DNA of 64,000 bases. It comes from Obrimoposthia wandeli. Lineage: Eukaryota. Positions 15,896 through 22,380 of the stretch are shown here, in pieces. The notes under the pieces were generated by a model, which saw only the letters and a program-made list of their open reading frames with translations, did no database searches and was not told where the DNA came from. The stretch's first letter is position 1, and every line of letters begins with the position of its first letter. The position numbers and the translations under genes were made by a program. The stretch lies in contig CDROCS010000253.1 of the NCBI GenBank assembly GCA_977020255.1, forward strand, positions 3,720,001 to 3,784,000. The letters run 5' to 3'.

Positions 15896-16516
15896 TTACA
15901 AATTAAGTTTTGGCAAAATATCTCTATATGAATCTCTAATGCGAGTTATATCACCCAGAACAAGTACATTACCTGACATGCTTGCCAGATGAACTGCTGA
16001 TAACATAACTAATCCATTGGAGTTAGTGATAATTTGTTTGAGTAATTGTATTGGATAACCTTCACCATGACGTTTCATTGCATGAATGCCACCGTGAACA
16101 TAAGAACTCGAAGCTTTCCAAGTCACATCTCTAAATTCACTTAGCATGCGGGTCGCTTCCGCTGGAGCCTTTCCATCAATTTGTTTAATCATTTCAACAT
16201 GGGAAGGCAAGCCGTTGTCGGCATTCGCTGTATCAATCGATAGCTCTTGCATGATTCGTTCAACCTTTTTATCTGTAGCTCCCCACAACATCCAGACAGC
16301 CCTTGTCAGTGCATCAAATTGAAGCCTTAACAAAGATATTGCAGAGGTACAGTTCCCAATTCTTATTAGGTTTTGAAGTGAATGAGCATGCTCTATTGCG
16401 ACATCACACATAACCCAACTTCCTGACCATCGTTTATTGATTTGATTTGGGCCAAGCGAAATAATAGGGTTAATTTCATTTAAAAGAGCAGAAGAATCTG
16501 TAAGTAGTTTTTCCAT
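15896..16516 (-). CDS. DUF6988-like helical protein, possibly HEPN-related
   Basis: SAISLLRLQFDALTRAVW and SSYVHGGIH resemble that family (recalled, not searched). Confidence 0.5.
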   Translation of the reverse strand: MEKLLTDSSALLNEINPIISLGPNQINKRWSGSWVMCDVAIEHAHSLQNLIRIGNCTSAISLLRLQFDALTRAVWMLWGATDKKVERIMQELSIDTANADNGLPSHVEMIKQIDGKAPAEATRMLSEFRDVTWKASSSYVHGGIHAMKRHGEGYPIQLLKQIITNSNGLVMLSAVHLASMSGNVLVLGDITRIRDSYRDILPKLNL

Positions 16517-16521
16517 ACGTG

Positions 16522-17361
16522 CTAACTACCCACTTTTACTAAAAATATTTTTCGTAGTTCATCTGAGGTTTCACTAAAATGAGCTTCCCTATGATGGTTA
16601 GGACACAGAGCTATGACATTGCTAATATGGTCTATCCCTTTTTCAGATAAAGGAATTATGTGATGACTCTCTAGATATAAAGAGCCAGCTTTGGTTCTAA
16701 AACCTTCTTCACCACAGTGTTCACAATTACCCTTAGCACGTAATAAAGCCTTATCTCTCACAGCTTTGCTTCTTGGGTAAGCAAGAGAAGTCGATTCTTG
16801 CTTTTCAGGATCACTAATTACTTGTTCACGTAATATAAATTGATCAATATAAGGTGATGCAATTGTTCCTCGTTGCAGAACACAATTACCATCACCATCG
16901 TATTCTTTAATATACCAATCCACTGAATCCAAATTTCGCTTATCAGCAGTAGATTTACCTTCTTTAAGCTTTTCCTTCGGATTCTCATCACACATAATTA
17001 CACGAACAGGACATTTTAACCGCGCAGCTCTTTGTAAAGAAAAATCCATGTTAATAGCTCTTCTTATTCGAATGCCCTTAAAATCTTCAGCCTCAGCCCT
17101 CATGTTTAACGCTTGAATTATTGAACCATTTACTATTTCACAATTATCAAACCAAAGGTTTAATACGATGATATTTTTATCTCTATTTTCAAAAGACCAC
17201 TCATAGCAATATTTGGGATTAGATGCAGATTTTTCAGCTCCACCTTTAAAATTTTTCCAATCACTTACATTAATGCCAGCATCTTCTACTAGCTCGATGA
17301 TTTTTCTATGTAAGGTAGGTTTTAAATCGATTAATTCTTGTTCTACTTTAGAAACACTCAT
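16522..17361 (-). CDS. HNH endonuclease with uncharacterised N-terminal domain
   Basis: CEHC...YLESHHIIPLSEKGIDHISNVIALCPNHHREAH (McrA-like Zn-binding HNH). Confidence 0.88.
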   Translation of the reverse strand: MSVSKVEQELIDLKPTLHRKIIELVEDAGINVSDWKNFKGGAEKSASNPKYCYEWSFENRDKNIIVLNLWFDNCEIVNGSIIQALNMRAEAEDFKGIRIRRAINMDFSLQRAARLKCPVRVIMCDENPKEKLKEGKSTADKRNLDSVDWYIKEYDGDGNCVLQRGTIASPYIDQFILREQVISDPEKQESTSLAYPRSKAVRDKALLRAKGNCEHCGEEGFRTKAGSLYLESHHIIPLSEKGIDHISNVIALCPNHHREAHFSETSDELRKIFLVKVGS

Positions 17362-17636
17362 TGATTACCCATAAATATAAGTTTTATGCAGAAATTAAGA
17401 AATCTTGGGATTCACTTAACACAATATACAACACCTTCTTGCAGTGATTACAAAAAAAACTATTAACCATTAAAGATGTGAAGGTTACATCATGCCGCCC
17501 ATATCACCATAAGCGTTTGAATAACAATAGGTATATTAAAAAGTAAAAACAAATACCCCTGAACGTACCCTGTGTCTTATGATGCTTGGTAAAGTCTGTA
17601 ACACGATCTTTCAGATTAAGTCACCTCAAAGGAATT

Positions 17637-19226
17637 TCACCCAAGTCGCCCCAATGTTATCTGCAAAAAGTTATTTGCTTCAACCTGTGACCGATAAACT
17701 CCATTTTTCAATAACTCATATCTTTCTCGAAGCTTACCAATTACTTCACCATCAGAACTAAGTACCTTAGTCACATAGTCATCTTCATTATGCAGCTTAA
17801 TAAGTTGACCTACCTGTGCATTAACGCCAGGCTCCCAATTTACAGGGAGATTAGCACTGGTTCCTTTCCAAACAGTATCTGATTTTGGTTTGTATTCGCT
17901 AATGAATGCTTTCCACAGTTTTGCAGTGTTTGCACCCATAAAATCTAGTACAGAGATATATGCTGTTAATCTTTCTGACGATAGCCACTCTTTAAACTCA
18001 ATACTATTCAAAAAAGAGGCATCTGTAGATTTAATTGAATTGATTGCCTCTAAACGTGAACTAAAGCCAGCTTGCATCAACATTGCAGCTCTTCTATTCA
18101 AGCTGCCATTTTCAACTGCTGGAACAATTAATCCTACTTCAAAATCATCAATAGTCATCCCATCAGAAATAACATCACCATTAGCTTGAGCACGAACTCG
18201 TAGAGCTTCTAATCCCCATGGAAGACGATAAACTAAACCATCTTCAACAAATCGTAATGTATCATCAATTGAATTAAAATCTTGATCACGAAGTGATTCA
18301 CCCTTTAGCCAGGCAGAGATAATTTCACGCCAATCATCTGGTAATATATTAGGCGTAAAAGGAGGTATTACAAACAGTAGTTCGGCTAATTTAGTTATTG
18401 CCGTTATAGCTTTCAGTACCTCAGCACCATCAAGATAGGCGTTAGCTCCAGTCAGTAACTGATTTCCTTCGGGGGCTGATTCATCTAACATTTTCCCCGT
18501 AGCTAAACCAACGCCTGCAAGATAGTAACCTTTCCTTTGATCAACAGTAGTTAAATTCCATATATGACGACCTCTCTGAACTAAAACGTTTTTAAAAATA
18601 ATTTGGATTTCTTCTTGCCGACGATTCAACCTACGCTGTAATAAAGATGACTGAAGTAGCTCATCAAGAACATTTGGAATATCATCAATTGAGATATTTT
18701 CTTCGCCCAACATACTTAAGAGTGCAGTATCTAAACTGACTAAATGGTTATCCCATGCATTTCTATTTTCTTCATTCTGCTGATTCAGCTCATGCGGTAC
18801 AGTTGGGAAAGTCCAAATAGCCGTATTGTTCATCACATATTCAAGCACTTGCTCAGAAGATTGAGTCTGTAAACTGGTAGCAATTCTTTGTATGAATGAA
18901 GCGATTAACCTAAACAAACCACTTTCCATATTGCGAGCGTTAGTATTATTAACTAATGCTCGCCATTGATTTCTACGCCAAGTTACCTTGTCGTAGATAG
19001 GATGTAGCACTAAGCCATGAGTATCTACAAACGCTCGTCCAGCTCGTCCAACAACATTCTTGAATTCTGATATATCGATTACCTTGCCACTTCTACGAAC
19101 AGAATAAACAATTAAAGCCGTTGCAGCTAAATTCAAGCCTTGCGCTAATGTTGGAGACGATATAGTGATTTTTAATATCCCATCTCTTAAAAGCTTTTCC
19201 ATTTCCTTTCTAAAAGGTGTAGGCAA
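17637..19226 (-). pseudogene. C-terminal half of a Ski2-like SF2 helicase (5' truncated)
   Basis: starts abruptly at LPTPFRKEMEKLL; retains SPTLAQGLNL (motif V) and VGRAGRAF (motif VI) but lacks Walker A and DExH; in-frame TAA at 19245-19247. Confidence 0.8.
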
Positions 19227-19227
19227 A

Positions 19228-20639
19228 TTAACTAGGACACTCGCTTATAAATAACCTGAAATAAAACAATAACACATGTGAAATATTCACTCAAAAGAAG
19301 CTAGAGAATCTCTAATAACTAAAATAGATATTAAGTCGTGTTAAATTTACAGTGAAACATGATGTTTAGTGTTTGTTATGATTTTTTTAGGCAGAGAAAT
19401 ACACATCAGAGTTGATGTTGGTCGATATAGAGTAAATTCAGAGGTTACGCTTCGATTATTACGCTAACAATTTATCACAGCAATTTACATTCGTTCGTCG
19501 CTTTAAACCTTTATGCTCACAGTAATCAGTCAATACATCGCTATGACCTACAGCGCCATGAAAGAGTTTTCTAAAGTCTTTACTTAACGTTAGCCAGTTC
19601 TCAGGGTTTATATTAAGTCGCGTTAATAACACAGGTTGCTTTGCTTCAATGTGACCTGCTTTATCTTCACGAAGACAACGTCCTGTCAGTTCAATTAATT
19701 CAAGATAATCGATTAACTCAAACGGTAAACCTTTTGGCATCGTTTTTCGTGGATCACCCACAAAAGGAAGTAGCCTTGATGGTTGTTTCGCTTTTTTAGC
19801 TGCCATTATCCGTTGCTTTACGCTCGTATAATCTGAGCTTTCAGGCGTTTGAGCTATATTCGCTCTTACGGGGTTTAAATCAACATAAGCCATACAAGCT
19901 GCAAGTGCTGCTTCATCTAATAAGGCTTGCGATTTAAACCGGCCTTCCCAAAAATGACCGGTGCAGTTATCTTCTTGGTTCGCTTGTCTAGCAATACTTT
20001 GGTTTAGTAAGCGCATAAACCAGCTAATATCCATCAAGCGATTACGATAGACCTCAACCGTTTCAAGTAAAGAAACCAGTAAATAGTCAGGAATTTCTTC
20101 ACCACGAGAAAACTGCTGCGTTATTAACGTGCCTTTAAATAGTTGATGCCAGCGCTCAAGTACTTCACTTGTTGTCCAGGCTTTCGCTGTCGCTTCATCG
20201 ACAAAAAGTACCATATGAGTATGGTTACTCATAATAGCGTAAGCGCATACGTCGATAGCAAAGACCTGACTTAAAGCGAGTAATTTATCTTCTACCCAAC
20301 CTCGTCTGTGGTCAAAATTCTGGCCTGTAGTTTTATCCTCACCACAAAGGTAAGCGCGGCGAACACAACGAGAAATACAATGGTAATAAGCCGTGTCGGC
20401 TAAGCTAATTAATTGTTTTCTAGCTGTTGTCATGTAGAGACCTTTCACATCCAAGTTATTTATTAACCCTAGTTGCGCTGTTCATATAATTCAACTTTGA
20501 GCGACTGTCCTTGTTAAACCTTGTTAAACATCAATTGTTTTCTAGCGGTTGTCATGTAGAGACCTTTCACATCCAAGTTATTTATTAACCCTAGTTGCGC
20601 TGTTCATATAATTCAACTTTGAGCGACTGTCCTTGTTAA
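19228..20639 (-). mobile_element. HUH/Y1 transposase element bounded by 18-bp imperfect inverted repeats, right end duplicated
   Basis: 19228-19245 reverse complement AGCGAGTGTCCTAGTTAA vs AGCGACTGTCCTTGTTAA at 20500-20517 and 20622-20639 (16/18). Confidence 0.7.
19459..20433 (-). CDS. Y1/HUH transposase (RAYT/IS200-related family)
   Basis: YYHCISRCVRR, MSNHTHMVL (HUH), FWEGRFKSQ, YVDLNPVRA; start set at MTTARK (20433). Confidence 0.85.
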   Translation of the reverse strand: MTTARKQLISLADTAYYHCISRCVRRAYLCGEDKTTGQNFDHRRGWVEDKLLALSQVFAIDVCAYAIMSNHTHMVLFVDEATAKAWTTSEVLERWHQLFKGTLITQQFSRGEEIPDYLLVSLLETVEVYRNRLMDISWFMRLLNQSIARQANQEDNCTGHFWEGRFKSQALLDEAALAACMAYVDLNPVRANIAQTPESSDYTSVKQRIMAAKKAKQPSRLLPFVGDPRKTMPKGLPFELIDYLELIELTGRCLREDKAGHIEAKQPVLLTRLNINPENWLTLSKDFRKLFHGAVGHSDVLTDYCEHKGLKRRTNVNCCDKLLA

Positions 20640-20641
20640 AC
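20411..20641. repeat. tandem duplication, period 122 bp (109-bp copies, 1 mismatch)
   Basis: 20411-20519 and 20533-20641 differ only at 20425/20547; covers the first transposase codons, its upstream region and the element end. Confidence 0.92.
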
Positions 20642-20744
20642 TTTTGTTAAACTTACAGACCTATATCATCTCTTTGCATTACTACATAAATACATTAAGG
20701 AGCTGAATAACAAAAATGAAAAAGTTTATATTAGTGATAAGCCA

Positions 20745-21035
20745 ATGACAGAAAATCAGATACTAGATGCTGCAGCGGAAATACTAGCCTGTAAATACGT
20801 ACGTAAAGATGCTTTTACCAGTAGTCAAGCAACTAAGGATTTCCTTCGGTTTAAGCTAGCCAACAAAGAACATGAAATTTTTGCGGTCATGTTGTTAGAT
20901 AACCAACACCAGGTGATTAATTTTGTTGAGCTATTCAGGAGGATTAAAGATGCAAGTGCGGTATATCCACGAGAAGTAGTTAACCTTAAGGCCAGGGTTG
21001 GTAATTATCAATTAACAATGGATGTCATAGTGTAG
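20745..21035 (+). pseudogene. radC: truncated RadC/JAB-domain gene
   Basis: EHEIFAVMLLDNQHQVI...VYPREVV then unrelated sequence from about 20982; HNHPSG JAB motif missing. Confidence 0.8.
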
Positions 21036-21171
21036 TGGCATAGTTATCTCTATTCTCTCTCTAGTTATTTTTTTGGGGATTCGTCAGAAACAGCAACCTT
21101 GAATACATCTTAAATATGTTAAAGCATTCTGTTAGAATAATGGGCTATTGATTAAAGAATACCGAGTCAGC

Positions 21172-22380
21172 ATGTCAGAATTTAAAGAATTTTCACTTTT
21201 AGAGTCAATTATTGACCGCGTTAGTCTTAAAGGCTATAAACAACCCACACCGATCCAAAAAGAGTGTATCCCAGTTCTTATTAATGGGAATGACCTTCTT
21301 GGTATAGCGCAAACGGGAACAGGAAAAACTGCGGCCTTTTCATTGCCTATTATCAATAATTTTGGGCGAAATAAAATTGATATCGAAACTAAGAGCACGC
21401 GTTCGCTCATACTAACGCCCACGCGAGAGCTTGCCTCACAAATAATGCAAAACATTGATGACTACTCTGATGGTTTAGAACTTAAAACTAAGGTTGTTTA
21501 TGGTGGTGTAGGAAGACAAGCTCAAGTTGATTCTATCGCACTTGGACTTGATATTTTAGTGGCCACCCCTGGAAGGTTATTGGATTTAATTGAAACAGGT
21601 GATATAAATTTTAAAGCGTTAGAAGTATTTGTGTTAGATGAAGCAGATACAATGCTTGATATGGGATTTTTTAACGATGTTCAAACCATCATATCTAAAC
21701 TGCCAAAGAACCGACAAACACTATTATTTTCAGCAACTATGCCTGCTGAAATAGAGATACTTGCAGAAGCAATATTAACGGATCCAACAAAAATTCAAAT
21801 TACGGCTGAAACGGTTACTATCGACTTGGTTAATCAAAGCGTATACCACCTTGATAAATCGAATAAACTACCTTTACTATTTAATATCCTGATAAAACCT
21901 GACTATGAAAAAGTACTCATCTTTTGTAAAACAAAGTATGGCGCTGACATCATTGTTAAAGCACTAGAAAAGGCATCAATAACTGCCGCTAGTCTGCACA
22001 GTGGTAAAACACAAGCAGTTAGAGAGGAAGCGTTACAAAACTTTAAAGATTCTAATCTAAGAGTATTAGTTGCCACTGATGTTGCTGCTCGTGGAATTGA
22101 TGTTGATAATATTACGTTAGTTATTAACTATAACCTTCCTGAAGATCCAAGAAACTACATACACCGTATAGGACGAACTGCTCGTGCCGGGAAAAGTGGC
22201 ATGGCTATTTCATTTGCGGTAGAAAATGATATAAGGCAATTAACTAATATTGAAAATAGCATAGGGCAAGTCATTCCTGTTGTTACAGAGCATCCTTTCC
22301 ATAAAGAGTTTTCAAAAGTGCCTAAAGAAGTTAAAAAGAAGGTTAAAAAAACAAATAAACCGAGAACAAAAAGAAAATAA
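21172..22380 (+). CDS. DEAD-box RNA helicase (RhlE-like) with basic tail
   Basis: AQTGTGKT, PTRELA, DEAD, SAT, ARGID, HRIGRTAR; start set at MSEFKEF. Confidence 0.93.
   Translation: MSEFKEFSLLESIIDRVSLKGYKQPTPIQKECIPVLINGNDLLGIAQTGTGKTAAFSLPIINNFGRNKIDIETKSTRSLILTPTRELASQIMQNIDDYSDGLELKTKVVYGGVGRQAQVDSIALGLDILVATPGRLLDLIETGDINFKALEVFVLDEADTMLDMGFFNDVQTIISKLPKNRQTLLFSATMPAEIEILAEAILTDPTKIQITAETVTIDLVNQSVYHLDKSNKLPLLFNILIKPDYEKVLIFCKTKYGADIIVKALEKASITAASLHSGKTQAVREEALQNFKDSNLRVLVATDVAARGIDVDNITLVINYNLPEDPRNYIHRIGRTARAGKSGMAISFAVENDIRQLTNIENSIGQVIPVVTEHPFHKEFSKVPKEVKKKVKKTNKPRTKRK

Follow-up and report, generated by a model that had tools for sequence, protein, structure and literature searches.

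A multi-copy Y1 HUH transposase element of marine bacteria with short inverted repeats on both sides of its gene

Our analysis identifies a mobile element that is present in multiple copies in marine bacteria and consists of a Y1 HUH transposase gene with short inverted repeats on both sides. It was found in a 64,000-nucleotide stretch of DNA (hereafter the window) of a 4.68-Mb bacterial contig (C253) that is part of a 1.35-Gb mixed assembly (GCA_977020255.1), where positions 19227-20519 (~1.29 kb) very probably represent a single copy of a TIRtron-type element. We are similarly confident in reading this copy as a Y1 HUH transposase of subclass 2.3 lying between two inverted cognate sites of ~20 nt. 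The arm at 19228-19245 (TTAACTAGGACACTCGCT) matches the reverse complement of 20500-20517 (TTAACAAGGACAGTCGCT) at 16/18 positions and GTTAA forms the outward end of both 18-nt arms, which confirms the repeats given in a preliminary description of this DNA, and the only real gene between the arms is that of the transposase at 19459-20433, as had also been claimed. The features of the element and its surroundings are listed below, with left (5') and right (3') used in the sense of the transposase gene (tnpA), which lies on the minus strand.

17637-19226, minus strand: superfamily-2 helicase fragment, C-terminal 529 residues, cut at the right end of the element
19227-19245, plus strand: right-end (3') inverted repeat, reading from outside to inside, outer edge at 19227 +/- 1
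19236-19244, plus strand: right-end core GACACTCGC, within the right-end repeat
19246-19458, minus strand: spacer of 213 nt from the tnpA stop codon to the right-end repeat, its length kept in the family (~185-215 nt)
19459-20433, minus strand: tnpA, Y1 HUH transposase, 324 aa from the ATG
20434-20499, minus strand: 5' leader of 66 nt from the left-end repeat to the ATG, with a TTGA box inside
20500-20519, minus strand: proximal left-end (5') inverted repeat, core plus outer 10-mer
20501-20509, minus strand: left-end core GACAGTCGC, within the proximal left-end repeat
20510-20519, minus strand: outer 10-mer GTTTAACAAG, outside the left-end core
20520-20529, minus strand: extra solo copy of the outer 10-mer GTTTAACAAG, between the complete left end and the partial copy
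20530-20641, minus strand: partial tandem copy of the left end (outer 10-mer, core, 66-nt leader, first 26 nt of tnpA)
20642-20652: degenerate further 11-mer beyond the partial left-end copy
20745-21035, plus strand: RadC-like gene fragment, homology ending at ~20980, on the opposite side of the element from the helicase
21009-21031, minus strand: probable solo end-repeat of a related subfamily, core GACATCCAT then TTGA box, oriented as the left ends

At the outer edge of the right end, homology to the helicase and homology to the orthologue in C. marinimaniae both stop at 19226, and the Logan contigs covering this point either start at 19229 or diverge before 19226. On the left edge the C. 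marinimaniae homology begins at 20515 and one Logan contig ends at 20519, with the partial extra left end of 112 nt stretching the element to ~20641. Positions 20408-20522 and 20530-20644 form a tandem duplication with 97% identity and 122-bp spacing, and a third repeat arm is present at 20622-20639 because the 5' end of the element has been duplicated in tandem. Read along the minus strand, the order is an outer unit (GTTTAACAAG, GACAGTCGC, the leader and 26 nt of the gene, from 20555 down to 20530), the solo 10-mer and then the complete left end. The 11-mer GGACASTCGCT with at most one mismatch occurs five times in the window in comparison with 0.69 expected, and 0 of 100 shuffles reached five. 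The TTGA box of the leader, 6-8 nt inside the core, recurs across the family, and the 3' spacer is conserved across the family in length and not in sequence or structure. A promoter scan of the window returned no confident tnpA promoter on the minus strand; an outward TTAACC-16-TATAAT pair was considered as a promoter and was discarded, being not above shuffles.

In order to place these repeats within the family we collected 16 paralogous loci from the assembly and the best 80 loci from other genomes, core counts being made on 86 homologous loci. When 250 nt of upstream sequence were compared with 450 nt of downstream sequence at each gene, the best inverted match scored 24.0 on average versus 18.7 for the reversed control, and common to these matches was a 9-nt core, G-[AC]-C-A-[CGT]-[CGT]-C-[AG]-[CT]. 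The core was present upstream in forward orientation in 75/86 loci, downstream in inverted orientation in 71/86 and on both sides in 64/86, with the wrong orientation seen in only 1/86 loci upstream and 7/86 downstream. Its position is similarly regular, as the upstream core starts ~74-80 nt before the ATG and the other core lies ~185-215 nt after the stop codon, giving a median core-to-core span of 1270 bp. From -8 to +13 around the core the paired arms of an element show higher identity to each other than arms of different elements do, so the repeat is ~20 nt long, and it is made up of a family-wide core with ~10 outer and ~5 inner element-specific bases. The variable core positions 1 and 5 match between the arms in 55/57 and 56/57 loci respectively, and position 4 is often C in one arm versus G in the other. 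The two mismatches between the arms of the window element are the same as in the C. marinimaniae orthologue, which indicates that the difference between left and right is itself conserved.

Copies of the element also end at these repeats. The window copy and that of C. marinimaniae are 79% identical over window positions 19226-20515 only and unrelated outside, and no synteny of the flanks was found with three related genomes. Copies within a genome share 89-95% identity over 1265-1323 bp, from ~-90 to ~+200 relative to the gene. On the C253 chromosome, which carries five full copies, two of them (L007 and L008) align from repeat to repeat and a further pair (L008 and L009) is 99.6% identical, beginning 5 nt outside the left repeat. 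Recent transposition is therefore rare, as identity within genomes, this last pair excepted, does not reach 99%. At least 18 matches found in three other Colwellia genomes begin at one left-edge nucleotide (L008 nt 1416-1419) and end variably. In an unrelated metagenome (X1) the Logan contigs part from the window ahead of 19226 on one side and past 20639 on the other, and two runs of another organism contain the gene with 0-1 differences without the flanks of the window. These comparisons support the inverted repeats as the true ends of a discrete unit. The preliminary description had proposed ends defined by the inverted repeats, a claim to be given up if the repeats were not conserved around homologous transposases or if copies had their boundaries elsewhere; among the homologous loci the repeats are conserved and the homology of copies stops at them, and the claim stands.

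The protein encoded between the ends shows separate matches to Pfam Y1_Tnp (residues 22-86) and NCBIfam REP_Tyr_transpos (residues 142-206), both below cutoff, which implies that the HUH core is split in two. In an AlphaFold model of the transposase (pLDDT 81.9, pTM 0.85) extra helices at residues 81-133 lie between strands of the core. The best solved structure for this model was 4er8_A (E. coli RAYT, E 9e-5) followed by the TnpA proteins of IS200, IS608 and ISDra2, whilst a sequence search of solved structures gave no match with the single protein and only a marginal match to IS200 with a profile. The motifs N-H-T-H, W-E and Y-V-D-L-N-P are conserved in 34 homologues. Within the HuH motif the N and both H are invariant with T as the consensus middle residue, and the protein reads A-Y-V-D-L-N-P and F-W-E-G-R-F, most positions of which are invariant and the others at least 90% conserved (n = 34). 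From the second HuH histidine to the Y of the catalytic motif there are 110 residues. Nothing in Pfam corresponds to the C-terminal domain, and its assignment as an AraC-type HTH was rejected as the domain folded alone (pLDDT 72) gave a best Z of no more than 3.0, which is not significant. The dN/dS of 0.06-0.09 versus two Colwellia orthologues shows that tnpA is maintained under purifying selection.

The duplicated left end of the window is one of many such arrays and is not peculiar to this copy. Two or more cores are present at the left end in 34 loci and at the right end in 31 loci, the right-end arrays mirroring the left-end ones on the other strand. Successive units of an array start with a common stretch of 10-13 nt outside the core, and their inner limits vary, lying in the leader, the gene or the 3' spacer. 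The shared outer (5') extension clusters at 9-13 nt in 23/49 left and 26/47 right pairs, and the inner (3') extent ranges from 3 to 226 nt. About a quarter of the array pairs share 0-3 nt instead of 9-13 nt, and these may be chance cores or decayed units. From this pattern we infer putative site-specific nicking at a fixed point ~10 nt outside the core.

Site-specific nicking followed by strand transfer through an enzyme linked to the 5' end is established Y1 HUH chemistry. In the mechanism that we propose, the transposase would recognize the core and cut one strand, the one bearing the core, at the fixed point ~10 nt outside it, so that opposite strands would be cut at the two ends of the element. 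The inward-reading strand would keep the enzyme bound at its 5' end, and this end could be linked to whichever 3'-OH is available; such joining would generate arrays of partial ends at both ends of the element, with a fixed start and variable internal stops. Since the ends are on opposite strands, unlike in the one-strand excision of IS200/IS605, the movement of the whole unit is left unexplained by this scheme. That each inverted end serves as an independent HUH nick site, and that transfer of 5' ends to arbitrary 3' ends is the normal movement of the family, is a tentative proposal which we regard as possible and on the doubtful side. If true it would constitute a pathway unlike both the peel-and-paste of IS200/IS605 and the spread of REPINs, and would leave behind nested arrays of ends, foreign genes trapped between ends (C253:2157907-2159375) and truncated neighbours such as the helicase.

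The helicase fragment aligns to residues 329-853 of an 864-aa homologue (P0002) with 82% identity starting from nt 19226, as expected from the earlier observation that its reading frame is cut directly beside the repeat. Between the start of homology and the outer edge of the right-end repeat there are 1-2 nt, and the helicase frame continues without a stop across the repeat until the TAA at 19245-19247. Missing at the locus are the N-terminal ~327 residues with the DEAD/ResIII domain, and on the other side of the element there is a RadC-like fragment and not the helicase N-terminus. Nothing in the assembly closely matches residues 1-327 of P0002, which argues that this DNA was deleted or lost rather than moved; a search of five related genomes with the helicase as query found no orthologue. 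A contig without mismatches spans 18891-19253 and the junction between helicase and element is therefore real. Under the proposed mechanism the helicase would abut the edge of the right end because an end of the element was joined inside the gene, the other half of which would then have been lost or never joined.

The preliminary description held that the element can delete or rearrange adjacent DNA, and this is no more than one possible reading, since recombination between copies or strain heterogeneity explains the loss as well as transposase action does. A break that is unrelated to the transposase, produced by recombination between direct copies of the element or by a mixture of strains that share it, has in our estimate close to an even chance of being correct, and it bears on the cause of the deletion only and not on the nature of the element. 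The absence of the N-terminal half from the assembly is what a deletion predicts, and the family is multi-copy. In addition, in run X15, the best match to the window among the runs, Logan depth is 3.7-4.3 to the left of 19229, 36-41 in the element and 34-37 in the right flank (window 17500-22000; rough figures, taken from assembled contigs), and hence in that run the same right end is mostly joined to another, more abundant left flank. The step at 19229 suggests either a polymorphic junction or a mixture of strains. Against this explanation the contig bridging 18891-19253 has no mismatch, and the assembly holds no second near-identical copy, the nearest other copy to the window tnpA having 65% identity at the protein level.

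The helicase fragment adjoins an HNH-nuclease gene (16522-17361) and a gene of 206 aa within window positions 15896-19226, and one distant homologue of the helicase carries a DUF1837 (HamA-type) domain; this helicase/HNH island may be a decayed defence locus. On the other flank, a RadC-like contig from run X19 ceases to match the window at 20980. The site at 21009-21031 lies 30-50 nt past the ~20980 loss of RadC homology and is identical at 22/23 positions to a C. marinimaniae site that has no tnpA within ~1 kb. Sequence likeness makes it a probable solo end belonging to a related subfamily, with weaker evidence than for the other parts, and if so the RadC fragment lies between two left-type ends.

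The family is carried by Colwellia, Thalassotalea, Pseudoalteromonas, Shewanella, Marinomonas and similar hosts among the best 80 loci from other genomes, where the nearest relatives of the window tnpA are in Colwellia species (87% protein identity). Matches, comprising copies and end fragments, run to dozens per other Colwellia genome. Carriage on plasmids was seen in 16 records, mostly chromids or megaplasmids of Pseudoalteromonas, of which only one was conjugative. No empty site was found in a collection of one genome per species, in which one flank was traced, that of the sister copy L008. In Colwellia sp. TT2012 the flanks of L008 are found on separate contigs, with the homology of the left flank ending at a repeat of a tRNA-Leu 3' end. 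A partial repeat of the tRNA-Leu(CAA) 3' end lies 5 nt ahead of the start of L008 (G000:C253:1662242-1666189; nt 881-965, 1345-1411), which places this copy at the edge of a tRNA-linked island; in Colwellia sp. TT2012 both this tRNA and the repeat are present, with no element at the corresponding position.

This distribution bears on the reading of tnpA as a domesticated, immobile RAYT-like gene whose repeats serve as operators or as binding sites in self-regulation or in a host function, and which has spread by duplication or by transfer of larger segments. Most class 2 TnpA-Y1 genes occur as a single copy and are passed on vertically (PMC5581495), and the 89-95% identity of copies within a genome, the strong purifying selection on tnpA and the overlap of the left repeat with the region in which the tnpA promoter must lie would all be in keeping with such a gene. 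However the homology of copies stops at the repeats and not at the borders of larger segments, orthologous units are found in unrelated flanks in different species, Colwellia genomes each hold dozens of copies and end fragments, and the L008/L009 pair is nearly identical. We therefore judge domestication unlikely and retain the reading of a mobile element bounded by inverted cognate sites.

Several features of known HUH systems were looked for at the element. Six end segments folded as DNA gave z-scores of -0.8 to +0.07, none of them significant, and an alignment of 29 sequences of the 3' spacer gave no consensus structure, Rfam returning only snoRNA rows at chance level, which were discarded. 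There is no TnpB gene at the element. The longest word shared by the two flanks averaged 4.05 nt versus 4.47 in shuffled pairs, giving no sign of a target-site duplication. The 18-mer does not form a dispersed family in the 1.35-Gb assembly, where it occurs as three local copies and one exact match elsewhere, and matches with two mismatches were not above the reversed-pattern control; both the lack of TnpB and the lack of a REP array agree with what had been noted from the window alone. The exact match is in C744, a non-bacterial contig of 31% G+C with no partner site, and was taken as chance. The 15-mer of a paralogue has 16 occurrences in the assembly, nearly all beside tnpA genes. With no hairpins, no TnpB and no dispersed repeat the element is neither an IS200/IS605 element nor a REPtron. 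A DDE-type insertion sequence was likewise rejected given the lack of a target duplication and a Y1 HUH enzyme as the only gene.

With IS200/IS605 elements (IS608, ISDra2) the element has in common the Y1 HUH catalytic core and the lack of target-site duplication, whereas the one-strand hairpin ends, ~150-aa transposase, Y-x3-Q motif and frequent TnpB of that family are all missing here, the Y motif of the window protein being Y-x3-NP and its ends being in inverted orientation. The E. coli RAYT (TnpA-REP, PDB 4ER8) is the nearest solved fold and similarly has its cognate sites inverted around the gene. In REP/BIME and REPIN-RAYT systems the REPs form GTAG-tagged hairpins and number tens to hundreds; the element here has no hairpins, and its sites are almost only next to the genes. 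That the ends would be subterminal or REP hairpins acting on single-stranded DNA, with the 18-nt repeat incidental, as in a classical IS200/IS605 element or REPtron, is highly improbable despite the catalytic fold common to the IS200, IS608 and ISDra2 TnpA and the E. coli RAYT, given that neither end has a significant hairpin on either strand, the 3' spacer has no consensus structure, TnpB and Y-x3-Q are absent and the repeat is not a dispersed high-copy sequence, the study defining subclass 2.3 having likewise found no REP-like sequences for it (PMC6006769).

The layout agrees best with RAYT-like Y1 genes with terminal inverted repeats, for which Di Nocera et al. 2013 (PMC3733652) gave the names TIRYT and TIRtron. 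Here as there a Y1 gene lies between two non-REP inverted repeats, at similar distances across members and with a short shared motif. The same article describes TIRYT repeats as sometimes forming dimers or clusters and many of them as sharing GGGGWSAS; the core here begins G-A/C-C-A-C/G/T and fits the last five positions (GWSAS) of this motif in most loci, the preceding G-run being mostly absent. As TIRYT/TIRtron elements have already been described, the element is not a new HUH class, and the suggestion of one in the preliminary description is not supported. The protein agrees with TnpA-Y1 subclass 2.3 as defined by Quentin et al. 2018 (BMC Genomics 19:475; PMC6006769). That article places 20/26 TIRYTs in subclass 2.1, which embeds subclass 2.3, and most published TIRYTs are proteins of ~240 aa with an HTH-like tail and ~2 copies per genome. 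The window element, in contrast, has 324 aa, two insertions in the core, a C-terminal domain of its own and many copies. Subclass 2.3 is described there with a median of 325 aa, WE and YVDLNP motifs, a HuH-Y distance of 110, an insertion of ~55 aa that splits the core, hosts in Alteromonadales and Chromatiales, several diverged copies in each genome and a lack of REP-like hairpins in the vicinity, all as here. The HuH consensus given there for the subclass is NHYH versus NHTH in all 34 sequences here. The article reports that no REP-like sequences were found for subclass 2.3, and its sections considered here contain no mention of inverted repeats or any flanking DNA feature, in comparison with the conserved pair of inverted repeats present here in about three quarters of loci. 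Full-text literature searches found no later work under the names TIRYT or TIRtron and no published description of ordered arrays of partial ends. The architecture is thus a known one, to which its occurrence in subclass 2.3, the core motif and the ordered arrays appear to add modestly.

The core, the fixed outer edge and the conserved difference between left and right arms provide concrete substrates and a predicted cut site for first in vitro tests of how a single-strand Y1 enzyme could act on inverted ends without hairpins. For annotation, such genes in Alteromonadales are at present labelled only "transposase" or "hypothetical protein", and the core motif can set the boundaries of the element, which helps to spot truncated neighbours and repeat pairs without tnpA.

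Other arrangements of whole elements and of ends were also seen. In Vibrio sp. WXL210, Shewanella metallivivens and Pseudoalteromonas rubra (L090, L100 and L077) whole elements are present as head-to-tail tandem pairs, along with a nearby inverted pair. At G000:C253:2157907-2159375 (L128 1508-2975) there is an inverted pair of end-repeats of a sister subfamily with no transposase gene inside, the left arm of which is identical over 21 nt to the left end of L007 and the right arm over 18 nt to the right end of L008. Its cargo consists of two ORFs, of 109 aa and 211 aa, that are separated by one more site resembling a left end.
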